The notes: generated from the letters alone by a model not told the origin. Positions 1 through 51,000 are shown, counted from the stretch's first letter. The stretch is 64,000 bases of DNA from Oikopleura dioica (GCA_907165135.1 OU015566.1:186001-250000), one strand, 5' to 3'. Numbers and translations: made by a program.

Positions 1-344
1 TGGCAATTGCTATGAATCATACTTTGTTCGGGCGATAGAAACATGCAGTAGACTCGGGCATTCCCGTATAGACCCCCGTTATGATTCATTTTTGTCCGAA
101 AAATGGAAAAATTTGTTGTCATCCGACGCAAGGCAAAAAATATCCATTTTAAGGCCATTTTTGAAATCCGTTGTCATCCAAAAAGTGGCCTTAAAATGGG
201 TTTTCACTGTACACTGAGAGATAAAATATATTATTCGAAAAAATTTGAGGTTTTTAGGTTGAAAAATCTTAGTCTCGACCACCACCCCCTTACGTCTTTT
301 TACATCTGTATCGTAAAATCTTGTATAGACTATACAGTATAGTC

Positions 345-697
345 CGGGAACCCTCGACTCGCCGGGATTTCCTCGACTCGCCGGGAGTTTGCATTTTTTT
401 TCCCGGCGAGTCGAGGGTCTTCTAGAAATTGCTAGAATCATCAATTAAACCCATTTTTAACGCAGATATATTTGATATTTTAAATCATTCCTTACCAAAT
501 ATTTCCCTAAGAAATGGTTCAGTAGGAGTTATAGTTTGGGTTTAAGGTAAGGGTTTAGGGTTAGTGTTGAGAAATGGTGTTAGCGATTAGGGTTAGGGTT
601 AGGGTTGGTGACCCTCGACTCGCCGGGATTCTGTCTGCATATTTTTTCCCGGCGAGTCGAGGATCAGGCGAAAATCCCGGCGAGTCGAGGGTCTCCC
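345..697. mobile_element. MITE with 8-bp TSD (GTATAGTC), subterminal CCCTCGACTCGCCGGGA repeats and a telomere-like core; second copy 6515-6866
   Basis: Inverted ends CGGGAACCCTCGAC / GTCGAGGGTCTCCC(G). GTATAGTC lies on both sides. Confidence 0.8.
541..606 (+). repeat. Degenerate TTAGGG telomere-like array
   Basis: GGTTTAGGGTTAG...GATTAGGGTTAGGGTTAGGGTTGG. Similar degenerate runs at ~984-1110 and ~40270-40290. Confidence 0.7.
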
Positions 698-841
698 GTA
701 TAGTCTACCCCATTTCTATAGACTACATGACAGCGAAATAGCCTAGCAAAAGCTAAAGAACTCAAAAAATTGCATTTTTAATTCAAACTATTGAAGCCTA
801 TCCCTTGCTTTCCTGACTAGTTGCCGACCACAATACGGTAG

Positions 842-2652
842 ATCATCAGAACAGAATGCTCTTCAGGAAGAAATCGAGAAAAACAATGACATATTGACAC
901 TCGACATGGAAGAAAGCCATCACAACCTACCTTTCAAAGACATCGCCCGTAGTATGATCTCAAAATTCGGCCACCCTCATTTTAGGTTAGTGTTAGGGGG
1001 GCTCCAAGGGGGCGAAGCCCCCTAGGTTAGGCCTTAGGGTTAGGAACTGCGTACTTTTACCCAAGGGGGGGTCCCAGGAAGCGAAGCCCCCGGGTTAGGA
1101 GTAGGATTAGGAAAAATAAAAAAATCAAATTATACTTGGCCGAATTTTGAGGTCATACTACCACATCGCCTTCCTAAAGTTCATCAAAGAATCCTGCTCT
1201 TCTGTCCAATTCGTGTTCAAAGGCGATGATGACATCCTTCTGATCCCTCGAAATCTCAAACAAGAGATTGACAAGCTCAGGAACACGGACGAGTTCGAAG
1301 CTCTCGGCTGCTTGAAAAAGGAATCTCTTGCAATAAGAAACCTAAAGAGCAAGTATTTTATCCCAAAACAACTCTTTGAAGAAGATGGTCTTCCCGATTT
1401 CTATTCTGGCGCAGGCAGAGTTCGAAATTCGTTGGCAGTACTGCCACGACTGCCACTGGCAGCTGCCAATATCGGCAGTCACTTGGCAGTGGCAGTTAAA
1501 TTTTTCAAGGGCTGACAGCTGTCAACCTACTTCAACTTCGAAAGATGTTAATTTCTTTATAAAGTTTTCTTTCAAGAACCACAAAAAAAACAACGCTTAT
1601 GAATCATAAGTTATGATCCAAATTCGCTCTCGACTCGAGAGTCTCGAGACCTAAATTATTCAATCATTTTAATCAAAAGAGACATTTTTATCTCAGATAT
1701 TGTCTCTTCTATAAGTTTAAACCGTCAAAAAGACTGTTTTTAACTTAGTTTGACTTTAAAAATTCTTAAAAATAGTATCAAAATTGGCAGCTTTTGGCAG
1801 TCGACTGGTAACTGCCACTGGATAGTTTGAAAATACGGCGCACGCGCACAAACTCGCACGCAAGATTTTCGAAAACTCGCGCTCGTGCGCGCACGAATAG
1901 GATAAAAAAGGGTTTTTATTCGGAATTTGGAGTTTTTTTCCTTCCTCGGAAATTTTGCGAATACCTTAACAAAGAAAAATAATTTTTCGTTCTTTTGGAA
2001 GAGCCCCTGATTACCTTCTATAGGTATAAAGTCTTCATAAAACATAATTCATAAGAAAAATTCTTAAAAAAACCAAAATTTTCGCCAAAAATACTTGAAA
2101 ATATACCTTGAAAAATACGCAGGCGTGTTCGCACGTGCGCGCACGCACGCACGCGCACGCACGCACGCGCACTCGGATTTCGATAATAATTCGCACGCGC
2201 ACGCGATTTTTGGGTGTTTTTCCAACTATGGCTGCCAGTGGCAGCTGCCTATTTTGGCAGTCAGTTGGCATTGGCAGTCGCCATTTTAAAAAAGCTGGCA
2301 GACGCTTGGCAGTGGCAGTCGCCATTATCTTTCAGATTTTCGAACTCTGGGCGCAGGTTATTTGACAACTGGGAAATTTTCAATGAATTTGGCGAAAGCA
2401 ATTTCCGATGTATCTGTGTTGCCGTTGGACGATGTTTACATTGGTTCCCTTATTGATGCCTCTGGAATGCGAGAAAAAGCGCGAAGCTCGAATGAAATCT
2501 GCGAAGGAATTCTTCATTCAAAGGATGCCATTCGTGAAGGTGATTTCTGTGCTTTACGGAAGGTGCCTGTGGCGCACGAGATGTCAAATCCTGCAGAACT
2601 AGAATTGATATTTCACAAAGTTGCGACTGAAAACTTGGACTGCGATCGATGA
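842..2652 (+). CDS. GT31 beta-1,3-glycosyltransferase (Galactosyl_T family), paralog A copy 1, 5'-partial, spliced
   Basis: Exons ~842-947, 1171-1414, 2357-2652 join to ...DILTLDMEESHHNLPFKDIAFLKF...FVFKGDDDILL...SKYFIP...DFYSGAGYLTTG...PLDDVYIGSLI. These are typical GT31 DxD and (E/D)DVY motifs. Two TE insertions interrupt it. Confidence 0.85.
948..1162. mobile_element. hAT-like MITE inside GT31-A exon (copy at 7117-7330)
   Basis: TIR CGTAGTATGATCTCAAAATTCGGCCA / TGGCCGAATTTTGAGGTCATACTACC. Identical TSD ACATCGCC at 940-947 and 1163-1170. Confidence 0.92.
1416..2349. mobile_element. hAT-like MITE forming a GC-AG intron in GT31-A (copy at 7584-8515)
   Basis: TIR CAGAGTTCGAAA / TTTCGAACTCTG. 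TSD GGCGCAGG at 1408-1415 and 2350-2357. GGCAGT subterminal repeats. Confidence 0.93.
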
Positions 2653-2660
2653 TTCGATGC

Positions 2661-2891
2661 CGTAGTATGATCTCGAAATTCGGCCACCTATAGCCGAATA
2701 ATTCGTCTATATTTTCAAAAATTCTGAGTGAAAAATTCGGCCAAATTGACCGAATTATTGCTCAGATTTTACAAAGTATTCTGGTGAAAAATTCTGCCCA
2801 AGCTGGCCGAATTATTCATCCATATGGATCCATATTAATATATGATTTCATAAAAATTCGGCTTTTGGCCGAATTTTGAGGTCATACTACC
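2661..2891. mobile_element. hAT-like MITE just after the GT31-A stop codon (copy at 8827-9057)
   Basis: Same TIR family as 948-1162. TSD TTCGATGC at 2653-2660 and 2892-2899. Confidence 0.9.
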
Positions 2892-3011
2892 TTCGATGCG
2901 CCTTTTATTTGTGCATTTTCAATTTTTTTCTATTGTAATAAAGCAAAAGAAAATAAATATAAGAGTCTTATTGATTTTTTTTCTGAGCGGCATTCTTTCT
3001 TCGTCATTAAC

Positions 3012-3116
3012 AAGGAGTCATGGGCGGCTCCTCACAAGAGTGATCCCTCTCCGAGAGAGAGATGAGGGCCGTACACAGCAGCGCCAGAGATCTTTCCGAC
3101 GCTGCAGCCCTTCCGC
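3012..3116 (-). mobile_element. Diverged solo LTR related to the 27.5-28.6 kb element (copy ~9176-9280)
   Basis: Shares GAGTCATGGGCGGCTCC...CAAGAGTGATC...CCGAGAGAG...GGGCCGTAC.CAGCAGCGCC with the LTRs at 27492 and 28520. Confidence 0.65.
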
Positions 3117-3486
3117 TGACACTAAGAAAACCTACCGAAAGACACGTAAAAACAGCGAAAACCGACGAAAACAAAGTTAGAAATTAAGTAGGGTAGTAAT
3201 GTTGTAATGCAGTAAATGGCTGCTTTTTGCAATGGTCCATTGCCAATGGACCCTGGGCTCATTATTACCCGATTTTACACAGGTACTCAGACAGGTTCCC
3301 CAAAAACAGGAAACAGGACCTGTGACAGGTTTTAACACAGCTCAGCTTGCCGAACCCAGAATGGACCTGCTGCATCTTTTTCGAAAAAAGCTTCAGAGGA
3401 CATTTTTGAAATTGCGAGAACTCATCGGAACGGTCGCTTTTAAAATCATAATTTTGATCTCTTTTTGACCAATTAAAAGCCTATCT

Positions 3487-3561
3487 GGTTTCATCCTCGA
3501 GGATGTGATGTTTACTGGAATCTTCCGAGAAATCGCTCAAGACAAGGGCATACAAATTTAA
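3487..3561 (+). pseudogene. Possible GT31 C-terminal relic (copy 9650-9724)
   Basis: Translates GFILEDVMFTGIFREIAQDKGIQI*, resembling the GT31 EDVxxTG motif. It is short and has no clean upstream exon. Confidence 0.3.
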
Positions 3562-5426
3562 ACTGGAATGGCCCGGCATTTTGCGAGAAACAAAGAAATT
3601 AATTTAAATAAGCAGTTGCCAATGGTCCGACACACTGTTTCTTTCACTGTTTAAGAGGATCAGGAGGATTCTTCGACGACTTTACAATTAACTAGAATGA
3701 ATTTGTAAATATCCTGTCACTCTTCAATATTTCTGCATTTTTCTGTGATCAGAGCTGTAATAAATATTGTAGATACCAACAATGTCTCTTTTGTAACTCT
3801 TCGTTATTACGGGTGTAGGGCGGCTTCGTTCGCAATTTGCTAACGCCGTTCGTCATCTTGCGATCGCCGTTCGCAACGAAAAAATATCTTGCTGCGAGTG
3901 TGCGCTTCGCGCACTTTCTGGTAAAGAACTCATTGGCTTGGCAGGAGCAGTCTTTTTCTACCGCTTGGACACATTTCGAAAAAAATTGTGAACGATTTTC
4001 GGCCAAAAATTTTTCGGTTTTGCGAACGCCGGAATGGGTTTAAATGTCCAGACGAGTTAAAATTTCCTCCACTCTCAAATAAATATAAAAGAAACAAAGA
4101 TTGAATTTTTTTTCTAGATTTCCTGAATAAAAATCATACATTGATTTTCAACGACCGATGAATAAAATTTCTATGAATTCATACTACGGGAAATTATGAG
4201 CAAGAGCAATGTTCAAATTATTTTTAAAGCCATACAAATTGATTCATGTCTACAAAAAAATACTCAAATAAAAGTCGTTGGCAAGTTGGCAAGTGGTAAG
4301 TTGCCGACCCCAGTTAAGATATGCAAGTAGTTTTGCTTGCATTTTATGTTTATTGTGGACTCATTTCTAGACGTTTTTTTTTCTCGATTCAAGACCATAA
4401 GAGACAAATTTATAATCGTTGGTCGTATTTAAATTGAGCAAGTCATACAAGCGCCAAGATGTTGGCCAAACTATAACAGTTGGCAAACAGTGGAGGAAAA
4501 CGCTAGCCAGCATACTTTTTTTTATTTTTGCAAGCCCGTCATACTTATTGACTAGGCCAATTTCTCTTGTTTTTTTGTGGTTCAAGAAAGAAAACTTTAT
4601 ATAGAAATTTATATCTTTCGAAGTGACAGTAGGTTGGCAGCTGCTCGTAACTGCAAGTTTTTTTAAAATGCCGACTGCCACTGTCAATTGACTGCCAGAA
4701 TTGGCAGCTGCCAATGCTTGTCGTGACAGTACTGTGAATAAATTTTGAATTCTGCAAAAAGTATTTATATTCTCTAAAGAATCTATTTTTCGAGTGACTG
4801 ATGCTCTGGGTGGGTGGCTTTTGTCTTCACCAAATCTTTACCAAAATATGAGCTAAAATCATTGAAATCGTGAAAGTTAACGAAATTGGCATCCTTATGA
4901 GAGAGTATTCTTACAAATCAGGCGCGGAGCGCATATAAGCTCATTATTATAATCAATTTTTTAATGTCTAATGTCAAATATGAACAAATGTCGTTTTTCC
5001 AGAAGTAAAATTGCGTAAAAAGTCAATTTACCTACGCGTAAGTCGATATGCGGGCAGGGGTTAACGTATTTTCTGAGAAGAGACGTTCCTTAGAGTGGTC
5101 ATTTGTATGCTTAAAATTATCAAAATCGATCTAGCAAAGACTCAAAATCCGCTCCTTTTCAAAAATTGCCTTTTTTCAAAATCGATGCATATGTTCTGAA
5201 AGTATGGGAAGATTTTTCGAAAGAACCTGCAAAATAGAAAACACCGCGGTAAGCCTAGGTATAACTTTGAACTTAGGAGAAAGTTACTTACATAACTTTT
5301 GTTTCATTGGACTCAGAAGCTTCATTCTCCCAGGCTGGGCAGATGAAGCTTCTGGGAGAGTCAAGCCTACCCACTTGACGTAGTGGTCTATAAACAAACT
5401 TAGAAAAAAGAGAAAATTTAAAAGTC

Positions 5427-5573
5427 TTACAAATGATAAGTTTTATTTTTTTTAGAAAATTCAATTGTTTCAGACAGCTCTTTTTTTCTCAAATAATTTT
5501 CTAAGCACTGTAGCGCCAAATCGTCGTTCCATGCGCTGAACTTGTTCGCAAAGAGGTGCTTCTGTTTGAGTAG
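5427..5573 (-). pseudogene. Orphan duplicate of the GCNT last exon
   Basis: Matches 11591-11737 ([29 protein letters not shown]...). It lies in tandem copy 1, with no upstream GCNT exons in that unit. Confidence 0.8.
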
Positions 5574-5739
5574 CTAAATGAAACTCTGTTAGTAGTGGCG
5601 TTATCCTGGTGAATCTTGATTAAAATTAACACTTTTTTCTCGATTTTAAATAGCTTCGATGATGGGGAAAACAAAGATAAATTGTTTCGATAACAAAAAT
5701 TTAAAACTAAAGTTGAAAAATTCTAGTTAAAAATTAATG

Positions 5740-5985
5740 GGGTGTAGGGCGGCTTCGTTCGCAATTTGTGAACGTCGTTCGTAATCTTGCGAACGCCGTT
5801 CGCAACAAAAAAAAATCTTGCCGTGAGTGTGCGCTTCGCGCATTTTCTTGTAGACAACTCATTGGCTTGGCAGGAGCAGTCTTTTTCTTCCGCTGGGACA
5901 CATCTTGAAAAATGTTGTGAACAAATTTCGGCCAAAAATTTTTCGATTTTGCGAATGGCCTTTGCGAACGAAGCCGTCGCCACCC
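5740..5985. mobile_element. MITE, GGGTG...CACCC family (other copies ~3812-4030, 11905-12150, 18766-19005)
   Basis: TIR GGGTGTAGGGCGGCTTCGTTCGCAA / TTGCGAACGAAGCCG..GCCACCC. The 18766-19005 copy has 8-bp TSD AGTTCAAA. Confidence 0.85.
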
Positions 5986-7010
5986 GATTAATGCTACAAA
6001 CAAAAAATATTCTTTAAAACTTTTAATCCGTAAATAATCCTCTCGAAGATTTCGAGTGCATGACGATTTCGATAGAGATTTTTGATCCATTTCTCTGACA
6101 TGTTGGCAGAAAAAATATTTTTGAGAGAATGAAAGAAAGAATCACCTATAGTCCAATTTAAACAACATATTTTGGCAATTGCTATGAATCATACTTTGTT
6201 CGGGCGATAGAAACATGCAGTAGACTCGGGCATTCCCGTATAGACCCCCGTTATGATTCATTTTTGTCCGAAAAATGGAAAAATTTGTTGTCATCCGACG
6301 CAAGGCAAAATATCCATTTTAAGGCCATTTTTGAAATCCGTTGTCATCCAAAAAGTGGCCTTAAAATGGGTTTTCACTGTACACTGAGAGATAAAATATA
6401 TTATTCGAAAAAATTTGAGGTTTTTAGGTTGAAAAATCTTAGTCTCGACCACCACCCCCTTACGTCTTTTTACATCTGTATCGTAAAATCTTGTATAGAC
6501 TATACAGTATAGTCCGGGAACCCTCGACTCGCCGGGATTTTCTCGACTCGCCGGGAGTTTGCATTTTTTTCCCGGCGAGTCGAGGGTCTTCTAGAAATTG
6601 CTAGAATCATCAATTAAACCCATTTTTAACGCAGATATATTTGATATTTTAAATCATTCCTTACCAAATATTTCCCTAAGAAATGGTTCAGTAGGAGTTA
6701 TAGTTTGGGTTTAAGGTAAGGGTTTAGGGTTAGTGTTGAGAAATGGTGTTAGCGATTAGGGTTAGGGTTAGGGTTGGTGACCCTCGACTCGCCGGGATTC
6801 TGTCTGCATATTTTTTCCCGGCGAGTCGAGGATCAGGCGAAAATCCCGGCGAGTCGAGGGTCTCCCGTATAGTCTACCCCATTTCTATAGACTACATGAC
6901 AGCGAAATAGCCTAGCAAAAGCTAAAGAACTCAAAAAATTGCATTTTTAATTCAAACTATTGAAGCCTATCCCTTGCTTTCCTGACTAGTTGCCGACCAC
7001 AATACGGTAG

Positions 7011-8818
7011 ATCATCAGAACAGAATGCTCTTCAGGAAGAAATCGAGAAAAACAATGACATATTGACACTCGACATGGAAGAAAGCCATCACAACCTACC
7101 TTTCAAAGACATCGCCCGTAGTATGATCTCAAAATTCGGCCACCCTCATTTTAGGTTAGTGTTAGGGGGGCTCCAAGGGGGCGAAGCCCCCTAGGTTAGG
7201 CCTTAGGGTTAGGAACTGCGTACTTTTACCCAAGGGGGGTCCCAGGAAGCGAAGCCCCCGGGTTAGGAGTAGGATTAGGAAAAATAAAAAAATCAAATTA
7301 TACTTGGCCGAATTTTGAGGTCATACTACCACATCGCCTTCCTAAAGTTCATCAAAGAATCCTGCTCTTCTGTCCAATTCGTGTTCAAAGGCGATGATGA
7401 CATCCTTCTGATCCCTCGAAATCTCAAACAAGAGATTGACAAGCTCAGGAACACGGACGAGTTCGAAGCTCTCGGCTGCTTGAAAAAGGAATCTCTTGCA
7501 ATAAGAAACCTAAAGAGCAAGTATTTTATCCCAAAACAACTCTTTGAAGAAGATGGTCTTCCCGATTTCTATTCTGGCGCAGGCAGAGTTCGAAATTCGT
7601 TGGCAGTACTGCCACGACTGCCACTGGCAGCTGCCAATATCGGCAGTCACTTGGCAGTGGCAGTTAAATTTTTCAAGGGCTGACAGCTGTCAACCTACTT
7701 CAACTTCGAAAGATGTTAATTTCTTTATAAAGTTTTCTTTCAAGAACCACAAAAAAAACAACGCTTATGAATCATAAGTTATGATCCAAATTCGCTCTCG
7801 ACTCGAGAGTCTCGAGACCTAAATTATTCAATCATTTTAATCAAAAGAGACATTTTTATCTCAGATATTGTCTCTTCTATAAGTTTAAACCGTCAAAAAG
7901 ACTGTTTTTAACTTAGTTTGACTTTAAAAATTCTTAAAAATAGTATCAAAATTGGCAGCTTTTGGCAGTCGACTGGTAACTGCCACTGGATAGTTTGAAA
8001 ATACGGCGCACGCGCACAAACTCGCACGCAAGATTTTCGAAAACTCGCGCTCGTGCGCGCACGAATAGGATAAAAAAGGGTTTTTATTCGGAATTTGGAG
8101 TTTTTTTCCTTCCTCGGAAATTTTGCGAATACCTTAACAAAGAAAAATAATTTTTCGTTCTTTTGGAAGAGCCCCTGATTACCTTCTATAGGTATAAAGT
8201 CTTCATAAAACATAATTCATAAGAAAAATTCTTAAAAAAACCAAAATTTTCGCCAAAAATACTTGAAAATATACCTTGAAAAATACGCAGGCGTGTTCGC
8301 ACGTGCGCGCACGCACGCACGCGCACGCACGCACGCGCACTCGGATTTCGATAATAATTCGCACGCGCACGCGATTTTTGGGTGTTTTTCCAACTATGGC
8401 TGCCAGTGGCAGCTGCCTATTTTGGCAGTCAGTTGGCATTGGCAGTCGCCATTTTAAAAGCTGGCAGACGCTTGGCAGTGGCAGTCGCCATTATCTTTCA
8501 GATTTTCGAACTCTGGGCGCAGGTTATTTGACAACTGGGAAATTTTCAATGAATTTGGCGAAAGCAATTTCCGATGTATCTGTGTTGCCGTTGGACGATG
8601 TTTACATTGGTTCCCTTATTGATGCCTCTGGAATGCGAGAAAAAGCGCGAAGCTCGAATGAAATCTGCGAAGGAATTCTTCATTCAAAGGATGCCATTCG
8701 TGAAGGTGATTTCTGTGCTTTACGGAAGGTGCCTGTGGCGCACGAGATGTCAAATCCTGCAGAACTAGAATTGATATTTCACAAAGTTGCGACTGAAAAC
8801 TTGGACTGCGATCGATGA
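7011..8818 (+). CDS. GT31 paralog A copy 2 (5'-truncated duplicate)
   Basis: Same exons as 842-2652 (7011-7116, 7339-7582, 8523-8818). No N-terminal exons were found in the duplicated unit. Confidence 0.75.
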
Positions 8819-11590
8819 TTCGATGCCGTAGTATGATCTCGAAATTCGGCCACCTATAGCCGAATAATTCGTCTATATTTTCAAAAATTCTGAGTGAAAA
8901 ATTCGGCCAAATTGACCGAATTATTGCTCAGATTTTACAAAGTATTCTGGTGAAAAATTCTGCCCAAGCTGGCCGAATTATTCATCCATATGGATCCATA
9001 TTAATATATGATTTCATAAAAATTCGGCTTTTGGCCGAATTTTGAGGTCATACTACCTTCGATGCGCCTTTTATTTGTGCATTTTCAATTTTTTTTTATT
9101 GTAATAAAGCAAAAGAAAATAAATATAAGAGTCTTATTGATTTTTTCTGAGCGGCATTCTTTCTTCGTCATTAACAAGGAGTCATGGGCGGCTCCTCACA
9201 AGAGTGATCCCTCTCCGAGAGAGAGATGAGGGCCGTACACAGCAGCGCCAGAGATCTTTCCGACGCTGCAGCCCTTCCGCTGACACTAAGAAAACCTACC
9301 GAAAGACACGTAAAAACAGCGAAAACCGACGAAAACAAAGTTAGAAATTAAGTAGGGTAGTAATGTTGTAATGCAGTAAATGGCTGCTTTTGCAATGGTC
9401 CATTGCCAATGGACCCTGGGCTCATTATTACCCGATTTTACACAGGTACTCAGACAGGTTCCCCAAAAACAGGAAACAGGACCTGTGACAGGTTTTAACA
9501 CAGCTCAGCTTGCCGAACCCAGAATGGACCTGCTGCATCTTTTTCGAAAAAAGCTTCAGAGGACATTTTTGAAATTGCGAGAACTCATCGGAACGGTCGC
9601 TTTTAAAATCATAATTTTGATCTCTTTTTGACCAATTAAAAGCCTATCTGGTTTCATCCTCGAGGATGTGATGTTTACTGGAATCTTCCGAGAAATCGCT
9701 CAAGACAAGGGCATACAAATTTAAACTGGAATGGCCCGGCATTTTGCGAGAAACAAAGAAATTAATTTAAATAAGCAGTTGCCAATGGTCCGACACACTG
9801 TTTCTTTCACTGTTTAAGAGGATCAGGAGGATTCTTCGACGACTTTACAATTAACTAGAATGAATTTGTAAATATCCTGTCACTCTTCAATATTTCTGCA
9901 TTTTTCTGTGATCAGAGCTGTAATAAATATTGTAGATACCAACAATGTCTCTTTTGTAACTCTTCGTTATTACGGGTGTAGGGCGGCTTCGTTCGCAATT
10001 TGCTAACGCCGTTCGTCATCTTGCGATCGCCGTTCGCAACGAAAAAATATCTTGCTGCGAGTGTGCGCTTCGCGCACTTTCTGGTAAAGAACTCATTGGC
10101 TTGGCAGGAGCAGTCTTTTTCTACCGCTTGGACACATTTCGAAAAAAATTGTGAACGATTTTCGGCCAAAAATTTTTCGGTTTTGCGAACGCCGGAATGG
10201 GTTTAAATGTCCAGACGAGTTAAAATTTCCTCCACTCTCAAATAAATATAAAAGAAACAAAGATTGAATTTTTTTTCTAGATTTCCTGAATAAAAATCAT
10301 ACATTGATTTTCAACGACCGATGAATAAAATTTCTATGAATTCATACTACGGGAAATTATGAGCAAGAGCAATGTTCAAATTATTTTTAAAGCCATACAA
10401 ATTGATTCATGTCTACAAAAAAATACTCAAATAAAAGTCGTTGGCAAGTTGGCAAGTGGTAAGTTGCCGACCCCAGTTAAGATATGCAAGTAGTTTTGCT
10501 TGCATTTTATGTTTATTGTGGACTCATTTCTAGACGTTTTTTTTTCTCGATTCAAGACCATAAGAGACAAATTTATAATCGTTGGTCGTATTTAAATTGA
10601 GCAAGTCATACAAGCGCCAAGATGTTGGCCAAACTATAACAGTTGGCAAACAGTGGAGGAAAACGCTAGCCAGCATACTTTTTTTTATTTTTGCAAGCCC
10701 GTCATACTTATTGACTAGGCCAATTTCTCTTGTTTTTTTGTGGTTCAAGAAAGAAAACTTTATATAGAAATTTATATCTTTCGAAGTGACAGTAGGTTGG
10801 CAGCTGCTCGTAACTGCAAGTTTTTTTAAAATGCCGACTGCCACTGTCAATTGACTGCCAGAATTGGCAGCTGCCAATGCTTGTCGTGACAGTACTGTGA
10901 ATAAATTTTGAATTCTGCAAAAAGTATTTATATTCTCTAAAGAATCTATTTTTCGAGTGACTGATGCTCTGGGTGGGTGGCTTTTGTCTTCACCAAATCT
11001 TTACCAAAATATGAGCTAAAATCATTGAAATCGTGAAAGTTAACGAAATTGGCATCCTTATGAGAGAGTATTCTTACAAATCAGGCGCGGAGCGCATATA
11101 AGCTCATTATTATAATCAATTTTTTAATGTCTAATGTCAAATATGAACAAATGTCGTTTTTCCAGAAGTAAAATTGCGTAAAAAAGTCAATTTACCTACG
11201 CGTAAGTCGATATGCGGGCAGGGGTTAACGTATTTTCTGAGAAGAGACGTTCCTTAGAGTGGTCATTTGTATGCTTAAAATTATCAAAATCGATCTAGCA
11301 AAGACTCAAAATCCGCTCCTTTTCAAAAATTGCCTTTTTTCAAAATCGATGCATATGTTCTGAAAGTATGGGAAGATTTTTCGAAAGAACCTGCAAAATA
11401 GAAAACACCGCGGTAAGCCTAGGTATAACTTTGAACTTAGGAGAAAGTTACTTACATAACTTTTGTTTCATTGGACTCAGAAGCTTCATTCTCCCAGGCT
11501 GGGCAGATGAAGCTTCTGGGAGAGTCAAGCCTACCCACTTGACGTAGTGGTCTATAAACAAACTTAGAAAAAAGAGAAAATTTAAAAGTC

Positions 11591-14500
11591 TTACAAATGA
11601 TAAGTTTTATTTTTTTTAGAAAATTCAATTGTTTCAGACAGCTCTTTTTTTCTCAAATAATTTTCTAAGCACTGTAGCGCCAAATCGTCGTTCCATGCGC
11701 TGAACTTGTTCGCAAAGAGGTGCTTCTGTTTGAGTAGCTAAATGAAACTCTGTTAGTAGTGGCGTTATCCTGGTGAATCTTGATTAAAATTAACACTTTT
11801 TTTCTCGATTTTAAATAGCTTCGATGATGGGGAAAACAAAGATAAATTGTTTCGATAACAAAAATTTAAAACTAAAGTTGAAAAATTCTAGTTAAAAATT
11901 AATGGGGTGTAGGGCGGCTTCGTTCGCAATTTGTGAACGTCGTTCGTAATCTTGCGAACGCCGTTCGCAACAAAAAAAAATCTTGCCGTGAGTGTGCGCT
12001 TCGCGCATTTTCTTGTAGACAACTCATTGGCTTGGCAGGAGCAGTCTTTTTCTTCCGCTGGGACACATCTTGAAAAATGTTGTGAACAAATTTCGGCCAA
12101 AAATTTTTCGATTTTGCGAATGGCCTTTGCGAACGAAGCCGTCGCCACCCGATTAATGCTACAAACAAAAAATATTCTTTAAAACTTTTCCTGCCCATCT
12201 GAGCGTGACGGCCGTTTGAAAATGGCTATTTTTTCCGAAACCGCTTCACTTCTCCTTTGAAAGAGCCTATCTCTTCAAATCTAGAAAAAAAGGATACCAG
12301 TCAAACTTTGTGAGAGGTTTTTAGGAATTGTAGTGGTTTTACAGAATTGCTCTAATTACGATCACGCCGCGGGGCAAAGCAAAGTTTGCCACGCGAGCAC
12401 GGCGCGTAAGTGAAATGATGGCGCACTTGCGCTGGCGAAATAATCGACTCTAAAACGCGCGCTCTTCCTGAAAAACCAAATAATCCGTTTCTAAACGCCG
12501 CTCTTCAAATTATTCTCACGTCCTGATGCTCGAAATCCGATTAGTCCGCTAAAATGGAATTATTCCTTTTCCAGTGACAAAATCCGTTGGTAACGAGTTA
12601 TTACGTTCAATGTTCAATTTATCCGATGGAAACGATACGATCGAATAACAGCCGATTAATCTACTGGGAACCCGAAAATTTGAAAAACTATAAAAACCGC
12701 TCACCATCTCTCTCACAGTCATTCTCACTTTTGCTCGCTCAGAGAATAGATCAAATAAAAGCTCAAAAACTTTACTCTTTTATACACAGCCAACTTTGCT
12801 CACTTGTCTGTATATTTCTCTTGTGTTCACTCATTTGCATAGGTTGCAAAACCATTACAGAATTATATTACTATCTTTAATTACTATCAACAACTCTTCT
12901 GGCCAAAACCGTAAGAGTTTTTCGTGAAGAAGAGGTTCGTTGGATCTGGTTCTGAACTAGGGCCTAGTTTGAAAATTTGGATATTTCCATATTCTCTCAA
13001 TGAAAAATTAATTCATGCGTTCATGCCTTAAGGACTTATTTAAATTACCCAGGGCAAATCGCCTGCTCCATAGATGCAGATTCCATGGCGATAGCTTCCA
13101 TAGCACTTTGGATAGAGTCCATTTTGAACGTGACCTCGCCATTTAACAATTCTTGCGAGACTCTGAAAATTTATTTGTTAGTTTTTTGACTGTTATTATT
13201 TTTTTGTAATAAGATGACTTCGTGCGTGTTTTGTGATTATTTTTGGTTGACGCGCGGGTCTGGATTTTGGCCAAAACGAAAGCGCTTATGAGCGAACTCG
13301 CTAAGCGAATCCAGACCCCTGGTTAACGTTTAGTCGTTGGGCCGAAATGTTTATTCATTGGGAGATCATTGATCTCAGATCAACGAAAAAAAATGTCGAA
13401 GAGTATATTGATTTTTTTATCTTTTGTAAAAAGCGAACCTGGAATTCATTCTTGTCATATTGGCGATTTGACGGTAAGGAGCCTGGCGCTCCTGGAAATC
13501 TGCTTAGTGCTGCCCAGAGAAACTCGTCTGGCGTGAGCGTATCGCGGCTCCAATGGAGAATCTCTAACACAGTTGAATTGTTAAGCGTGTAGTCAACGAA
13601 CGCACGGGAGAGGATATTGTACGCGGAGCCTGCAAATTTTCCGATTCCGTCTTAAACACATTTCTAACAATTCAAATTGCTTATGTATTTCTTACGTGGT
13701 GGTGAGGAATTCTCCCGCTTTGTACTAACAACCTCAAGCTCTCCGTTTTCCCCTTTCTCCAACTTGAAGCGCAACCTTAGTCGATCTTCTTTTTGTGGAG
13801 TCATCGGCACGGATTCGATTTCGTTCTGTGGTGTTATAAAAGAAGGCTTTCCATGAAAAACATTGACTATTTTTCTAGCCATGATTAAGCCTTGCACAGA
13901 TATTGACCCACAGTGGACAAATAACGGGTGTAGGGCGGCTACGTTACAAGTAGTTAAAATTGTAACGGCGTTACAAAAATTCAAAATCGAAATCATCGAA
14001 CGAGTGTGCGCTTCGCGCTTGAATTAAAGGAAACTAAATTTTGGTACACATTATCAGTGGAATGAATGACAGTGGAATGCACTTTCTGTCCCAGCGCCTC
14101 TCCCCCCCCCCCTTCTTACCTATGCGGTTAAAGTTTTGCGACCCAAAAAATACGGGATGGTCGGACTCATTACCGAAAATTTTGGTAACTCATTACCAAT
14201 TTTTGGTCGTTCATTACCAATTTATTTTGATTTTTTCGAGTAAATTGCGGGAGCACAAATTCGCTCTTCGAATGAAAAAAAATTGACAGTTTTTCGTCGA
14301 ATTTACCGTAATGCCTTACCAAAATTGGAAATGTGTTACCAATTAGAAATGTGTTACCAATTGGAAATGAGTCCGACCGTTTCCCAAAAAAAAGTCGGAT
14401 CAAGATTGTGCGGGTCTGTGCGGTTTTTTCCGAATCAATACCACTTTTGGTACAAACCAAGACAAGGAATAAATACGGCATGAAGTGACGGGGGAAAACG

Positions 14501-17500
14501 GACTCGGTTGGCCCAACTCCCGCCGAGTGTGAACGTGCAGGAGGTGTCAAGCCGAGTGAAGGAGATGCAAGGGACAACGCCGCCGGTGTGAACTCCTGCA
14601 GAGACTGCTCCTGGGCCCAAGTTGGCGCAAGTCTCGGTGTGAATCCTTGAGTAAAAAGAAATTAGGTGCATGTTGAGCCGGAAATCATGATCAAGCTCAG
14701 CCTGGATAATCTTCAAAAATGAAGATATGGAAGACTAAAAATTAGAATTCTCTGAAAACTTCCATGATAGGGTAAAATTTGATTCTGATTCTGATGCCGC
14801 TTTCGTTAAAGTCTTTTGATGTTAGATTTTTGAAATAAATCACTTCCAATTATTATCAGCTCCAGGGCTGTTGATTCCGGGTCCTTTCGGATTACCCGCG
14901 ACTAAAAAAAACATTTAGGTGTCAACTAATCTCACAAAAATATTTTCACCTATTATAAGGCAGCCCGAGCAATTCCGACACCTCGACCAGAAAATCACCA
15001 ACTAGCCTCTTACTTATACTGTTTTGTAAAAACTTAGCAGAAAAACTTTCAATTTAAACTTCAACCTCGTCACTTCTTGCCTTATTTGTTCCTTTTCTTG
15101 TTTTGACCCGATTTCTTTCTCTTATGAATGACCCCCGTTTATTTGGCCAAACCAAAAAAATAGGTGTAAAGATAGGAAGTTACAAAAAAGGAAGTGATGT
15201 TTTTGGAATGGGTTTTCATTGGCCGGTAGGCAAAATGAAGCCATCTTATTGGTCTTCCAAAAACGCACGTCCTTTTTTTCTCACTTCCTTTCTTTATTCT
15301 TACTTTTTTTAATTTGTGCCCGTTTATTGACGGACCAATCAGTCCCGCTTCACCTGTTAATTTGGCACGTTTTTAATAAATAATCGTATTTAACAATCTG
15401 CTACTGAAAGATCACTTTTTTCATGGCTAGAAATAATTCACTTTTGTTCATGGAAAGCCAAGATATAAGACAAATAGCGGACCATTTCTGCATTCGTCTT
15501 GAGAGGAAAGTCCGTTCCGCATAAATTGATGTAGTATTTCCATCTGATCGGGTGATTTAAAAGATCTTTCATACAGTTTAAATCCGCTTGCAGTCTCAGA
15601 ACGGTTGAAATCGGGTGTCGGGCGCTGAGGTTATGCCATAACCAGGTTATGCATTTTCCTGGATTTTGCATAACCTGGTTATGCATTCTCGATTTAAATT
15701 GGAACAATTTGAGTCTTAATTAGCTATGGGAATAAATTATCACTGATAATTTATCAGGCATTCTTAAATAATTTGGAAGTCATAAATGCAACCTATCCTT
15801 GAATAATGAGCGTAAGTGACGGTTTCTCTTTTCGACGCTAAAAAGACATTCGGAAAGCAGCTGGCGAGGCTTTCAAGGGCTTCATAAAACTCATCAGGAG
15901 ATTTCTTATCAGCGTGGATGCAGTAGACATTCTGCGGATGATAAATCGACCGTAAAAGGCGCTAAAACAGAGATAAGCCAAATTTTTTTTTAAAAAGGGT
16001 TTAACCAAAAAAATGAACCAATAAAATAGGATGAATCTATTTTGAAACGATAAGCATTTTTACTTAAATTTCCTTATTTCAACATTTTTTACGCTTATCA
16101 GGGGTCTGGATTCGCTTAGCGAATTCGCTCATGAGCGAAGCGAAGCAGAGCTTTACCAAAAATTTTCGCGAAAATATCGCCCATAAGAAAACGTTCTAAG
16201 AGTTGTAAATTTTGCTGATTGAACTAAGCTTTTTCTTTCGCTTTTTGGAAAATTTTTTCGCTTCGCTTCGCTTTCGAAATTTTGATTCGCTTTCGCTTTA
16301 AATTTTTGAAAAATTTTCGCTTTCGCTTCGCTTTCGCTTTTCATTTTTGGCCGAAATCCAGACCCCTGCGCTAAAAGATAGAAAATTTATGAGTAATCAG
16401 CTATTTTTATTGAGTATGTGCGCTTTAAATGCCCGCTCCGCGGGTTTAGTGGTAAGAAAATCAAAGATGGGAAAACAATAACAAAAGAATACAAATGACT
16501 GTATTCTTATCTTATAATTTCCAATTTTAAGGCTACGGGGGTCGACGAGGCTCTAACCATGGCCTTATTCCGGGAAACCCAAAAGAGTTGGGGGCTTGAA
16601 TCTTTCATTAATAGTTAATTTGAACTTAGATCATGACTTGTATAGAAGAAAACCTAAAGTTGATAGGCATTTTCTTGCCAAAAAATCGCTTCAAAGTTGG
16701 CATCTCGACCTATATTAGGGTAAAATTGGTTGAATCTTCCAACCTTTCGGGATCCCGAATGTTTCGGGATTTCCCGAAACGTTCGCAGTAAAAAAGGGCC
16801 TTTTTGTCTTCGACCCTTTCGGGGATGATTTTCAATAGTTTCTATCCTAGAAAATATTTTAAGCCAAACAGTAACGTCAAAGTACATCTTTATTGAAGAA
16901 AATGGAGGCGCGAAGGAAAAAAAAATAATTAACTCGAAAAAATGGATCTTTAACTCATGAAGTTCTCTATAAAACAGGCGCGGAGCGCACACATTCTCTT
17001 TGACTACAAATTCAACATTTATAAAAGGTCTGGACTTCTTAGACCATCGAATTCGACGAAGGCAGGTAGAGTTATCTTTTTGGTTAGTAAAATGCCCTAA
17101 TTCGGCATTTAGGCCACTTTTTTTAACGTTATCCTCACCAAAACTCCCGAAAGATTCGGGCGATCCCGAAAGGTTCCGGAAATCCCGAAAGATTCGGGAA
17201 ATCCCGAAAGATTCGGGATCCCGAAAGGTTGGAAGTGACAACCGGTAAAATTGGCTTCAATTCTGAAGAATTGAACCTATAAACCTACACTTAGTATATT
17301 TTTAAATAAAATTTCAAACCTTTTGAAGCCTTTGTATACAAAGAAATCGTGGATAGATTTGGAATTTTGGTATTCCAATACCAAAGTCCGCAAAAAATGT
17401 CAATTTTTAAAAATTTAAAATCGGGTGTGCGCTCCGCGCCTGTATTATACGATACTTTAGGATTGTTTTTAATAATTTCTCGGGCGGAAAATCCAAATTG

Positions 17501-20050
17501 TCTAAAAAATTTGGTATTGGAATACCAAAAAAGCTTTGGTATTGTAACCGACCGTTCCCGGATAGAATCAATAAAAATATCGAATTTAATTTTTTGAAAA
17601 GTGAATCTCGTTAAAAATTGCATTTTTTGAAATAACGATAAACGATTTTTGCTGTAAAATCCAAAATATCTGGTATCATTAAAAACCAAGGCTACCATTA
17701 GATTTTTCGTGCTCTGCGCTTTCGAAAGAGCCCCAAATGACGAAAATCCAAGCCAAAAATTTTTTTCGGTCAAAGTTTTAGCGCTCGTATCTCGGAAACT
17801 ACAAATGTTAACAACTCACTTTCAACTGTACGTCTACTTTATTTCTTGCGGAGAATTCACGTCGCATAATTGATATTGTGATACTTTCAAGTTAAGACCA
17901 CATATAACGTCGACCCCTGTACCCTTAAATTGGCAATTTATGATTAAGACCTAAAAAACTGACCTCAACTTCTCCAGCATTTTCGTAAACAGCAATTGCA
18001 AACGCGATCGAAAATTGGGGTCAGGAACCCACATCATTGTTAACCAATTTTAACAATTCTTTGGCTCATTAAAAAAAACAAGAGTCCGTTCCGCGGTTGA
18101 ACTGTGATTCTCCTCCTCGTATTGATCGAATTCACCCTTTTGATTAATCTTGACACTTTTTGGTACTGGGTACCCGTTTTGGATTAATGTCAAAAATTGG
18201 TTATGGGTAGAATTAGCGAGCTTTTGAGTAATGTGTATTTTTAAGCAAAACCAAAACTTGAAGTGATGTTTTGGATCAGGGTTTTGATTGGCCAGAAGAC
18301 CAAAAGCAGCTCTCTTGTTTGTTACTTAAAATGCATGAATCATGCAGCATGATGGTCTATATTTTGCCTTATTCATGCGGGAACCAACAAAATTTTTTAT
18401 AGATGAGCGCACGGCGCCCCGAACTCAAATCAGTCTTTAGCAAGTATAATTTACTCGCGCGAATTCTTAAGTCAAGACAAGTCTTCGTCAAAAAAGAAAA
18501 GACATTCTCTCGTTAAAATTATCCCGAATCCCGGTGAGGTAAAGAAAACTTTCGATCATAAAAACTTGAGAAAATCGAGGATTAACGGGCTCTGCCCCAA
18601 AAAGTAGCGCCGTGCGGGAAAAACGGCAAATAAAAATCATTTAAAAAATACTTATATAATTGAAATTCGGGTAAGGGTTAGAAATTTGACTCCAAAAAAA
18701 TTGTTCGAGAGCGTCTCATCTTACATTGTGGAAGTCTGTATTGCCTAGGATTTCGCTAGTTCAAAGGGTGGCGGGCGGCTTCGTTCGCAAAGGCCATTTT
18801 GCGACTGGCGTTCGCAAAAACGAAAAATTTTTTGCCGAAAATCGTACACAACTTTCTTCAAAATGTGTCCCAGCGGTAGAAAAGGACTGCTCCAGCCAAG
18901 CCAATGAGTTCTTTACCAGCAAGTGCGCGAAGCGCATTCTCAAGGCAAGATTTTTTTTCTTTGTGAACGGCGTTCGCAAATTGCGAACGAAGCCGCCCCA
19001 CACCCAGTTCAAACAGTAAATTTCAAAAAACTTGATATCTAAAAATTTTATGAAAATAGTGTGATTGACCACAGACGTGGGTTCCCGACCCCAGGTCGGA
19101 AAGTCAGCTTCTTGTTTGCTCAATGTTGATGTAACGTATTTGCGGTCTTTGATGAATGAGGCGCATTGCTTGTTTTTTATCCACTCAGTCAAGCTCGTGT
19201 CCGACATTGTTGCTATGTACTCAGCCATGTTTTCTTGCTTTGTATTCTGTATTCTTTGCTGTAATTTGTCCAATTCTGCATTTGATAATGAAGAATTGAT
19301 GATCGCGTCGCAATTTACTCCAAAATACTCATCAGCTGGGAAATGAAAATGAAACTATTTCAAGCTCTTATAAAGAGTCATTTACAGTTATTTTCCTCTT
19401 TTGTGGACATTTTTTGTCCCAAATTTTCATAAAAATGTCCACAAAAGTGGGCAAGAGTCTCCAAAAAAACGTAAAACTGTACGACCTTAAAATTTTTTCT
19501 TCGATAAATTTTTCTTCGAAGAATGGCGAATTTTATCATCAAAACGCCATTATTTTCCTTGTTATCCCATTTTTGGTCAATTAAACTGTATTAGACATTG
19601 ATTTCTTATCAAAAACGTCCTGATTTTTGAAAAAAACACCCTATTTCTTCCTAATAAATTTTTTCGGCTGGACAAATGTCCACAAAAGTGGAACATTATC
19701 CTTGCAGAAGTCTCCCATAAAAACCCCTTAAAATGAAGACAATGCCCACAAAGTTGGGATCCACAAGAGAGGAAAAAAACTGTATTTAAAATAATATATT
19801 ATTTAAAAGAAGATTTCAAGTAAGCGATAACGACCTAAGCATAACCTGAAAAGATGAGAATCTTAATTCAAGCCTGATTCCTTTGATATTTTCGCATTGA
19901 TGCTCTTTGGAACTCTCGAACTGCTCGTTTGATCCAGAAAATGAGGTGACTCGTCAGCGTGGTTAGGAAAGCCGTCCAGCGCGATGAAAAAGTAATCGCA
20001 GAAAAGATCACTCCGATCAAATAAATTTGTTTTCTTTTGAAAGCACTCAT
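11591..20050 (-). CDS. GCNT: Core-2/I-branching beta-1,6-N-acetylglucosaminyltransferase (GT14, Branch family), 9 exons
   Basis: Exons 20050-19874, 19335-~19097, ~18008-17964, 15961-15798, 15594-~15459, ~13846-13696, 13650-13439, 13162-13049, 11737-11591. Motifs [102 protein letters not shown]. Exon 1 needs +1 nt in a T-run. Confidence 0.92.
13843..15461. mobile_element. Old TIR element with 8-bp TSD interrupting GCNT coding sequence
   Basis: Ends AAGGCTTTCCATGAA / TTCATGGAAAGCCAA. TSD TATAAAAG (13835-13842) vs GATATAAG (15462-15469). Confidence 0.75.
16099..16368. mobile_element. MITE with TTCGCT repeats (short relative ~13255-13322)
   Basis: TIR CAGGGGTCTGGATT / AATCCAGACCCCTG. TSD not clear. 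Confidence 0.75.
16728..17242. mobile_element. MITE with TTCGGGA/TCCCGAA subterminal repeats
   Basis: Inverted ends GGTTG...CTTCCAACCTTTCGGGATCCCG / CGGGATCCCGAAAGGTTGGAAG...CAACC. Confidence 0.7.
18015..19094. mobile_element. hAT-like CTGGGGTCGG-family element interrupting the GCNT F-P-I codons
   Basis: TIR TTGGGGTCAGGAAC / GTTCCCGACCCCAG. TSD ATCGAAAA (18007-18014) vs GTCGGAAA (19095-19102). Contains a nested MITE at 18766-19005. Confidence 0.88.
19385..19782. mobile_element. Tc1/mariner-type MITE (TA TSD)
   Basis: ta|CAGTTATTTTCCTCTTTTGTGGA ... TCCACAAGAGAGGAAAAAAACTG|ta. Confidence 0.8.
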
Positions 20051-48080: not shown

Positions 48081-51000
48081 ATGAGCTTGGGCATAGTTGG
48101 AAAAACAACCGAAACTAGCGTGCGCGTTCGCTCTTTTGTCTCCGGGTGCGCGTGCGCAAGTATTCTTCTTTACATTGTAATTGGATCTTTTAGATATAAC
48201 CTCGACTACAATGGTTTTCCCAGACCTCTAAGTTCTCATTGAAAATTTATATTATCATAGATTGGAAAATTTATATATTTTTTTAATACAGTGATAACCC
48301 AGTTTAAGGCCGGCCCTTTTAAGGCCACTTTTTGGAAAATCCCCAAAATCTGTCATCCTCAAAAAATCCATTTTAAGGCCACTTTCTTTCAATCTCTATT
48401 GATGATTTCAAAAACTTTTGTGGGGCCGGAAATCGTAAAAACTGCAAGTGCAGTTTTCTTCAGCTCCTCGAGACGAGTTGAATGATGGGTCTAACTCTTG
48501 ATAACTCTAAGGATTTACCGGTTTACCGGCTAGTTACCGGAAAATACGTTGTCACCGGCCGTTTTTGTTCTAGAAGTGGTCAACAGATGCCCGACCCAGG
48601 AAACTGTTCCTTATGGTCAGTTCTATTGCAGGCTAAAAGATGAAAGTCGTATCATTACTACGAAGAGAGTTATCACTAAAAACAGTAAATTTTGCATAAA
48701 TTTCGTTGTCGCTGCACGTTCCTGATTTTTAGTCCCATTTCCGCCAAAAATAGTATTTTAGTGATAACTATCTTCGGAATAATGATACGACTTTCATCTT
48801 TTAGCCTGCAATAGAACTGACTATAAGGAACAGTTTCCTGGGTCGAGCATCTGTTGACCACTTCTAGAACAAAAACGGCCGGTGACAACGTATTTTCCGG
48901 TAACCAGCCGGTAAACCGGTAAATCCTTAGAGTTATCAAGAGTTAGACCCATCATTCAACTCGTCTCGAGGAGCTGAAGAAAACTGCACTTGCAGTTTTT
49001 ACGATTTCCGGCCCCACAAAAGTTTTTGAAATCATCATTCAATATTGAAGCGTCACTTGAAAAAGCTTATATTATTTGACTGCGTGATGTCTCGTGTTTT
49101 ATGTTCATTTCTATTTTTTGGTACTCTTCGATAATTCTTTCTCGAATTATTTAATTGACGATGATTTCTTACGGTCCTCTTTGAATTTTCACTTGCATTT
49201 TGAGTCCAAGAATTCCAATTTATCATTATATAGGCGTGTAAAAACACGCAGATGAATTTCAAGAGCATTTTTCTTTCGAAAAAGCTCAGTTATTGTCTTC
49301 TACACGTCACTATTCTTTGACGTCTTCACTAGAACCTCTTCATATCTTTTTTCTAAGAATTTTTCATCGTGATCCTTTTTCAGACGTGTCTTTCAGATAA
49401 AATTTTTGAAATGATTTAAGAAAGAATCACCTTGAATTCAATTCAAAGGTCACATTTAGAAAAATCCATGATTAATAAACTTTATATTATTTTTTTCGAG
49501 CGAAAGAAATATGCGATAACCCTATGACCCTCATTCATAATTTCTTATCCCAAGAAAGGAAAAATTTGTCCTCATCCGACTCGAGACAAAAAATACCCAT
49601 TTTAAGGCCACTTTTGAAATCCTCTGTCATCCGAAAATCGGCCTTAAAATGGGTTTTCACTGTAATTCAAAATTTTTTTTAGATTATCCGTTTCTGAATG
49701 AGATGCTTCGTTTCAATAAGAACATGAAGCCTTCAGTTATCCAACAGCCAGATGAATGTCAATTTCAAGATTCTAGTTTACCTTCTCTGATTTTCGGAAT
49801 CAAGTCAATGCCAAAAGCGATTCAAGCAAGAGAAACTTTGAGGAGAACTTGGTTAAGAAAAGAAATATGGAAAACGCTTGGATTTGAAATCAAGGTTGTT
49901 TTTATAACTGGAAAAGACAAAGGCTGGGGTCCGCAACAAATATAGAATATTTAAAAAAGGTTTTAAAAATCTAAGCCAGGATGCTACACCGCGCTGCTAT
50001 CCTAGATATATGGTCGGAAGGGAGCCCGCGCGTAAATAGGCAAAATAGAAGAACAAACTCATCCGAGGGGCTACGGTCAGTCAGTGTTTGAAAATTTGGT
50101 CGAAACTAAGATGGGCGAGTGAGCGCGATGCTTTGATTTTTTCGTGAGTGAGCGAGTGCGAGCAGAAGCTCCAAAATTTTTCATGAGAGATTGAGCAAAA
50201 GCGCTCCCTCGTTCGCTCAAGCTCGCTCGTGAATCACGAGTTGTGATGATTAAGCGCTTGGTATTTTAGTCTCTCAATGATGGCTTCATAAGTGGCTTCA
50301 TCTGCTTAAGGGGGTGGTGGTCGAGAATATTTTTTCAACTCTTCGAAATTCTGATTTTATTTTTGAGATCCTTGATAAAAAGGGAACATTTTTTGTCCCT
50401 AGCATTTTTTGATTTGATCTAGTTTACTTAAGAAAATTTTCAATTTTATACCGGGAATTTAAGAATTTTCGAAATTTTGATTTTTATAATTTGTCCAAAA
50501 ACCGATGATAATTTTATTTTTGCTGCGAGAGATTGTTAAAATACTAGATAGGACTTATAAAAATGCAAAAATTGAGAATATTTGCCATTTTTACGAAAAA
50601 TTTAGTTCAAATTGTGTAAAAAATGACGATTTTCAGGAAAACAACATTATTATAATGAGCTCCTGCTTCCTCAAAACGATACACAATATTTATAAAACTA
50701 TCTCGCCCACACGCGCAAGGGTCTGAAGTTTAGACTCTGAACTTTCTTCAGAATAAATTTTATTTTGAAAAAAATTTAAGGGTTTCTTCGAAATTTTGTC
50801 AAGAGATAGGTCCATTCTAGAAGCATTTTTCGAGTTTTTTCCGAGAATTTATTTTTTCATACCTAGTCGCCCACATAATTTGAAGCCTTTTAAACCCATT
50901 TTCGTTGCAAAAAGAAAAAAAAATTTTGAAAAATTTTGAGGTAATTTTGTTGAAAGAAATCCGATTCTCGACCACCACCCCCTTAAGAGCTTCATTTGCA

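Follow-up and report, generated by a model that had tools for sequence, protein, structure and literature searches.

A transposon insertion with no strand-preserving G*-AG solution points to a disrupted GCNT glycosyltransferase gene in Okinawan Oikopleura dioica

The GCNT gene at the start of chromosome 1

The window is a stretch of 64,000 nucleotides (OU015566.1:186001-250000; positions below are counted from its first letter) from the transposon-rich subtelomeric start of Oikopleura dioica chromosome 1, in the Okinawan reference OKI2018_I69, assembled from a single male (PMC8008620). Judged by its sequence, the gene described here, on the minus strand, is a GCNT/Branch glycosyltransferase (core-2/I-branching, GT14, PF02485); exons C, D and E match the Pfam family Branch (PF02485) with E-values from 1e-13 to 9e-6. 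The sole near-identical protein for its exons is CAG5101797.1 (Oidioi.mRNA.OKI2018_I69.chr1.g3), recorded at 187-210 kb of OU015566.1, a chromosome of 14.5 Mb. This is annotated gene number 3 in the first ~210 kb, compared with a genome mean of one gene per 3.7 kb, and the public annotation calls no other gene within 10 kb of it. The gene spans 8.5 kb, versus ~2.4 kb in L002, a Tara Oceans metagenome scaffold of 2.8 kb on which the whole gene has a compact relative.

Nine exons were reconstructed (1, A, B, C, D, D', E, F and G) and all are open, D' being the second coding piece, after a second transposon. Candidate exon 1 (19875-20050) starts with an ATG at 20050 and encodes a good type-II signal anchor; its length agrees with the 60-70 residues that precede the conserved xxC motif in homologues. 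Exon A, the stem region (19103-19335, with an acceptor cccag| upstream), has a gap-free alignment with its counterpart in L002. Its end on the minus strand reads ...AAG CAA GAA GCT GAC TTT CCG AC, where GAC TTT CCG AC occupies 19105-19095, so that it ends ...SKQEADFP when the bases of the target-site duplication (TSD) are counted. Exon B (17964-18008) carries the Branch domain's first beta-strand, in the frame (AT)C GCG TTT GCA ATT GCT GTT TAC GAA AAT GCT GGA GAA GTT GAG|gtcagt, with the codon ATC at 18008-18006, its 3' end at 17964 and then the donor GTCAGT. It covers positions 1-16 of the Branch domain, the later positions being matched on exons C, D and E. Exon C (15795-15961) is preceded by a 2-kb intron filled with transposons, which is ~48 nt long in the relative.

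Exons D', E, F and G (11594-13804) are the only part present in the public model, which begins downstream of the second insertion and comprises the C-terminal 225 residues. That model was made with AUGUSTUS and RNA hints (PMC8008620). We attribute its shortness to the interrupted exons that the predictor meets and to missing RNA hints. The focal element aside, ~450 codons stay open over the nine exons. Among 61 full-length homologues, 38 alignment columns are conserved to at least 90%, the P and the A of FPIA included, and the conceptual protein retains all 38.

Anatomy of the focal element

The conserved coding exon is split at D-F-P|I-A-F-A-I-A-V by a non-autonomous element of 1,080 bp (18015-19094, minus strand) with terminal inverted repeats (TIRs) of 20-21 nt. 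The left TIR is CTGGGGTCGGGAACCCACGTC (19094-19074) and the right TIR GATGTGGGTTCCTGACCCCAA (18035-18015); they differ at 2-3 of 21 positions, by transitions, and an inverted-repeat search returns them as 20-nt arms of 90% complementarity. The TIR end motif has five matches in the window at up to three mismatches, versus 0.05 expected. The left target-site duplication TTTCCGAC (19095-19102) and the right one TTTTCGAT (18007-18014) agree at six of eight positions (chance ~0.004). The original prediction, which described the site accurately in every particular, had placed an in-frame TGA 6 nt before the right duplication, and it is found there, within the right TIR (18021-18023).

A MITE with 25-nt inverted arms is nested in the element (18766-19005). 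Four copies of it, with 82-88% identity, lie at 3811-4030, 5740-5985, 9974-10193 and 11905-12150, and this nested MITE is the only part of the element with related copies in the window. The search for a transposase remnant in the focal element gave none and found no Pfam domain. Rfam covariance models had no match on it either, by which a self-splicing group I or group II intron was rejected; the matches in the scan are sub-threshold, miRNA-like and confined to the hairpin of a MITE at 19384-19456. The two TIRs are predicted to fold, in the sense RNA, into a continuous 20-bp stem that closes the whole element, in which the two mismatches become G.U pairs (orientation p = 0.25). The formation of such a stem is a property of any TIR element.

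Relatives and the ancestral site

In L002 the site is uninterrupted and reads GAC TTC CCG ATT GCG, i.e., DFPIA. The focal insertion is thus lineage-specific and the ancestral target is TTYCCGAT. With this ancestral state, the divergence of the duplications falls where it had been predicted, at position 8 of the left copy (ancestral T) and position 4 of the right copy (ancestral C). It had further been argued that both changes lie on the positions that would be intronic. The positions are indeed right, while as an argument the coincidence is weak, with a random expectation of p = 28/64 = 0.44.

A closer relative of the gene is represented by its 3' half in L008, a JGI contig. Synonymous sites among the Okinawan gene, L002 and L008 are saturated (pS 0.8-0.87). 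The Okinawan branch is longer than that of L008, and the changes at codon positions 1+2 versus 3 are similar (0.62 vs 0.49). Owing to the saturation and the similar ratios, this comparison is uninformative on a recent relaxation of selection. Tara haplotypes of the relative contain too few sites for polymorphism.

Splice solutions across the element

We enumerated every intron that starts with G, ends with AG and lets the reading frame of exon A stay open through the whole of exon B. There are 44 such solutions; their acceptors lie only before 17971 or 17968 and all of them lose 12 residues. In this exhaustive enumeration no G*-AG pair keeps the IAFAIAV strand, in line with the original prediction that no AG acceptor would preserve it. 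The upstream AG acceptors are all blocked because of the in-frame TGA. An introner would be recognised by a G*-AG pair that removes the element in frame without loss, and no such pair is present. A cryptic in-frame pair, GT(19089)...AG(17973-17972), loses 12 core residues. The termini that would restore the frame are CG..TT, GA..TC, AC..CG and CC..GA, as well as CT..AT if the protein is to read DFPTA.

Other routes were tried and rejected. The consensus of a U12/AT-AC intron is absent, and the minor spliceosome has been lost in larvaceans (PMC13326754). Recursive or two-step splicing cannot make an AG downstream of the TGA, and spliced-leader trans-splicing requires an AG. The non-canonical introns published for O. 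dioica are of the G*-AG type (PMC4122922, PMC7072748), and non-canonical introns make up 11% in the OKI2018_I69 assembly (PMC8008620).

DNA and RNA reads over the locus

Both junctions and both duplications are real. A DNA contig from run X1 spans 17888-18795 with no differences, unbranched at the junction and at a depth of 67, compared with 58-81 in the single-copy flanks; a contig from run X3 spans 18969-19397 with no substitutions and two gaps (positions not given). The two runs come from the assembly's own study and are therefore not independent individuals. Errors of the assembly, which the original prediction had named as a possible source of the AA and TSD bases, are ruled out by these contigs. 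Most 31-mers of the element are single-copy in run X1, at a depth of ~67 that equals that of the flanking single-copy contigs. The insertion looks homozygous. Among the contigs no DNA joint that skips 18007-19102 is listed, a search in which rare forms could be missed.

The number of RNA reads on the GCNT exons is zero in two oligo-dT RNA-seq runs from 2026 (X11 and X12, ~12 million records read), which is to be taken as absence of evidence: the runs may be of another O. dioica lineage, the cryptic species are too divergent for mapping at 90%, and the stretch holds no control gene. The only placement of RNA reads is on a low-complexity repeat at 16226-16424, in the intron between exons B and C. 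Seven indexed runs hold parts of the stretch, none of them on record as RNA. The absence of a cDNA had been named beforehand as speaking against removal of the element, and as far as the two RNA runs reach no cDNA was found. Exon A does not occur in predicted proteins of 108-345 residues. Exon E, compared with 1.84 billion representatives, finds only the short public model and relatives of at most 61% identity, and a protein search (P0001) returned one metagenome fragment. An exact search of the JGI metagenomes for a 26-mer of exon B gave no match, and a scan of wild DNA with the protein of exon C detected distant GCNT homologues only.

Other transposon-born interruptions of the gene

The focal element is not the only transposon in the coding sequence. 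A second TIR element, unrelated to it and of a TIR family unlike its own, lies inside the next coding exon (13844-15462, minus strand) between the 8-bp duplications TCTTATAT and TCTTTTAT. Several G*-AG pairs would remove it in frame; one of them, a GC donor at 15458 and the AG acceptor before 13846, adds four residues. A symmetrical solution places the splice sites within its own TIRs, and the four residues then fall in a loop that is variable among relatives. The target of this element is uninterrupted in L002 and L008.

In L002 itself, a 150-nt MITE is found 18 nt upstream of the equivalent of the focal site. Its TIR gives a perfect GTAAGA donor and its target duplication the AG, making a clean GT-AG intron. 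A further element in L002, in NCMS|DLL, has an in-frame GT-AG solution, read by eye. Transposon-born introns thus seem to be real and recurrent in the GCNT gene, and to use ordinary G*-AG signals. As the other interruptions all have G*-AG solutions, the focal element is an exception and not a part of this system.

A probable disrupted gene copy

We suggest that the focal element is a disruptive insertion that has produced a null allele or a nascent pseudogene, and give this a probability of about 0.65. A non-autonomous cut-and-paste DNA transposon would have entered the GCNT exon that encodes the first beta-strand, making an 8-bp, hAT-like duplication of its target. Since no acceptor keeps IAFAIAV, this gene copy could not make the normal enzyme. 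If transcribed, it may run into a stop 113 codons into the element, use the cryptic in-frame pair GT(19089)...AG(17973-17972) and lose the 12 core residues, or skip exon B. We infer that such a null copy is tolerated since the gene is probably dispensable in the Okinawan lineage.

A broken copy agrees with the lack of a splice solution, with the missing transcript, model and protein evidence, and with the repeat-rich subtelomere. Against it stand the otherwise intact reading frame with its 38 of 38 residues, and the divergence of the duplications (2/8) and of the TIRs (2-3/21). Repeats in the window give a local indel/substitution ratio of 0.10, at which the probability of an intact frame falls approximately as exp(-184 t) for ~1.47 kb of coding sequence. 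Had the gene been neutral since the insertion, the joint probability of an intact frame and at least two mismatches between the duplications would be ~1.5e-3 at best. This number must be heavily discounted because this one case was chosen out of hundreds of exon insertions, and further because the TIRs were maybe imperfect at birth and the repair of the breaks maybe imprecise. Even discounted, it keeps alive a removal of the element from the RNA at non-AG borders, considered below.

Alternative readings

The gene might instead be transcribed and the element removed by the only in-frame canonical pair, giving an altered or inactive product; we consider this unlikely. The GT donor lies in the left TIR (19089) and the AG at 17973-17972, with the junction 19090|17971, and the product would read ...EADFPTW-EVE-RLLRS..., in an open frame and without the first beta-strand. 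Being in frame, such a transcript would avoid nonsense-mediated decay, and the CTGAC of the right TIR matches the branch-site consensus, with this AG the first to follow it. However, runs X11 and X12 hold no RNA reads for it, the downstream exon would be just 8 nt long, and the lost core strand includes residues that are at least 90% conserved in the homologues. Selection could therefore not explain the intact downstream exons if this pair were used.

It can also be speculated that the element is removed exactly, at the RNA level, at non-AG borders, which would restore DFPI/TA and a functional gene; this appears rather improbable. The junction would join ...GACTTTCC(G/GA) to (A)TCGCGTTTGCA, or alternatively ...GACTTTCCG(A) to (A)TCGCGTTTGC, and the agent would be either a spliceosome of relaxed specificity in O. 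dioica or an excision for which the TIR hairpin serves as the guide. In the latter form, for which we hold out equally little hope, the stem would bring the two ends together and exact removal would keep the Okinawan GCNT functional. In a variant of this, the last A of ...CCCCAA, facing a C at the stem's base, may be converted to I and read as AG; a literature search for ADAR in Oikopleura gave nothing usable.

What speaks for exact removal is first of all the open frame with its invariant residues, kept despite the diverged duplications and TIRs. Both changes in the duplications, polarised with L002, are consistent with a junction that gives back DFPIA, and the sense RNA can form the 20-bp stem, with both its mismatches as G.U, that closes the element. 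Exonic transposon insertions are also rarer than intronic ones in the GCNT gene, which argues that the gene was under selection while transposons accumulated. The 5' splice site of O. dioica is permissive, and the species shares a prominent m6A signal of the U1 snRNA with Fritillaria borealis (PMC13326754). On the other hand, neither the two RNA runs, the run index nor the predicted proteins give transcript evidence, and no class of introns with non-AG acceptors has been described in O. dioica. AC/AT acceptors are linked to U2AF-beta paralogues that are peculiar to the lineage of F. borealis (PMC13326754). The candidate termini fit neither AG/AC or AG/AT with YAY nor the euglenid CAG/CTG rule (PMC11282704), and both the position of the changes in the duplications (p = 0.44) and the orientation of the G.U pairs (p = 0.25) are expected often enough by chance.

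Finally, it is very improbable that a transposase acting in trans excises the element from somatic DNA and that the ends are rejoined over the CGA present in both duplications: microhomology-mediated repair would regenerate TTTCCGAT (DFPIA), joining at the shared CGA giving exactly GAC TTT CCG ATC, but the element is non-autonomous with diverged TIRs, and contigs from whole animals cross both junctions unbranched, at a depth equal to the flanks and with no skipping joint listed. In favour of such a repair, O. dioica is reported to be without classical NHEJ; against it, programmed excision is not known in tunicates.

Comparison with known systems

As a disrupted gene copy, the locus resembles a hAT-like insertion of MITE type, with its short TIRs, 8-bp duplication, missing transposase, nested MITE and gene-poor, transposon-rich subtelomeric setting. 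However, the focal TIR starts with CTGGG/TTGGG and not with the YARNG of hAT elements. The locus also differs from an ordinary exon-disrupting insertion in that its duplications have diverged while the host reading frame shows no decay.

Transposon-born spliceosomal introns, or introners, are described from Micromonas and Aureococcus (Huff et al. 2016; reviewed in PMC11282704). The focal element shares with them its TIRs and duplications within a coding exon. In contrast to introners, it has no usable AG, carries an in-frame TGA and is not one of many near-identical copies. A resemblance to introners is seen in the second Okinawan insertion and in the L002 MITE, where the TIR provides the donor and either the duplication or the TIR the AG.

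In F. borealis, non-canonical AG/AC and AG/AT introns are derived from MITEs (Henriet et al. 2019; PMC13326754). The similarities to the focal site are the larvacean host, an exon interruption derived from a transposon, the inverted-repeat ends and a removal that would need a non-AG 3' end. The focal termini are however not AG/AC or AG/AT with YAY before the 5' splice site and in the last three bases, and the introns of O. dioica in this analysis have GT-AG or G*-AG ends. Beta paralogues of U2AF1/2 are likewise specific to the F. borealis lineage (PMC13326754).

The nonconventional introns of euglenids have in common with the focal element a pairing of TIRs that joins the ends, TSD-like repeats at the junctions and non-canonical borders (PMC11282704, PMC12501133). 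They differ in that none of the focal candidate borders has CAG/CTG at +4-6/-8-6, and the focal host is an animal. We know of no intron pathway of the euglenid type in animals. In comparison with programmed DNA elimination of the IES-like kind, the molecules with an empty site are not seen in the contigs of the carrier.

Significance of the locus

The value of the locus is that of a clean test case, as the same gene contains interruptions with workable G*-AG solutions, in the Okinawan genome as well as in a wild relative, and the focal one without. If exact removal were true, O. dioica would neutralise exon insertions independently of splice sites. This would extend a removal like that of Fritillaria or of euglenids to a second larvacean lineage, one without the U2AF duplication, and would bear on the birth of introns from transposons and on the origin of the non-canonical system in Fritillaria. 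If the element is retained or there is no transcript, the case marks the limit of what the permissive spliceosome of Oikopleura can rescue. As a broken gene copy, it is ordinary, one more transposon insertion in a repeat-rich chromosome end, in a genome whose DNA transposons are evidently very active.

A probable intron birth in a wild relative

A compact relative of the GCNT gene lies on Tara Oceans scaffold L002 (TARA_SAMEA2611380_METAG-scaffold_15102). It carries a MITE of 150 nt (L002:955-1104), 18 nt upstream of the site that matches the focal insertion. Its TIRs are AGGGTAAGAAA...TTTCTTACCCT and it is flanked by a 9-bp target duplication, GTTGAGCCA. Read as an intron, the MITE takes its donor, GTAAGA, from the TIR and its AG from the target duplication, giving a clean GT-AG intron. 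It appears to be an introner-like birth of an intron in a larvacean.

A second TIR element of the relative, about 350 nt long (L002:1650-2010), splits a conserved motif between NCMS and DLL. Contigs of six different samples carry it; besides L002, these include L003-L007. Its removal appears possible only with an in-frame scar of nine additional amino acids, using a GT after TCA and an AG before CTGGGAGG.

Other interruptions of the GCNT gene

Inside the next coding exon of the O. dioica gene lies a second TIR element (13844-15462, minus strand), unrelated to the focal one and flanked by an 8-bp duplication, TCTTATAT/TCTTTTAT. In-frame G*-AG solutions (introns starting with G and ending with AG) exist within its own TIRs, with a GC donor at 15458 and an AG before 13846, adding four amino acids. 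The insertion site is uninterrupted both in L002 and in L008, a contig with the 3' half of a closer relative.

The C-D intron (15795-15605, minus strand) can be read in two ways. Taken as GT-AG, it gives the protein ...YSRIADLNCM, while a GA-AG reading comes closer to SR(V/L)QADLNCM, the consensus of the family. The intron is a candidate for the GA-AG type known in O. dioica.

In intron 1, a MITE hairpin (19384-19456) has miRNA-precursor-like Rfam matches; these lie below threshold, at 20-30 bits where the gathering scores are 60-106, and are most likely spurious.

Neighbouring glycosyltransferase genes

Two GT31-type galactosyltransferase genes (795-2650 and 49541-53307, plus strand) are each interrupted by several different TIR elements, with the coding pieces still open. 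The whole cluster shares this pattern with the GCNT gene. A 6.17-kb tandem duplication (1-6170 and 6171-12340, ~99-100% identity) includes a GT31 gene and, as a stray copy, the last exons of GCNT (5291-5573, corresponding to 11455-11737). Either the duplication happened very recently or the assembly produced it as an artefact.
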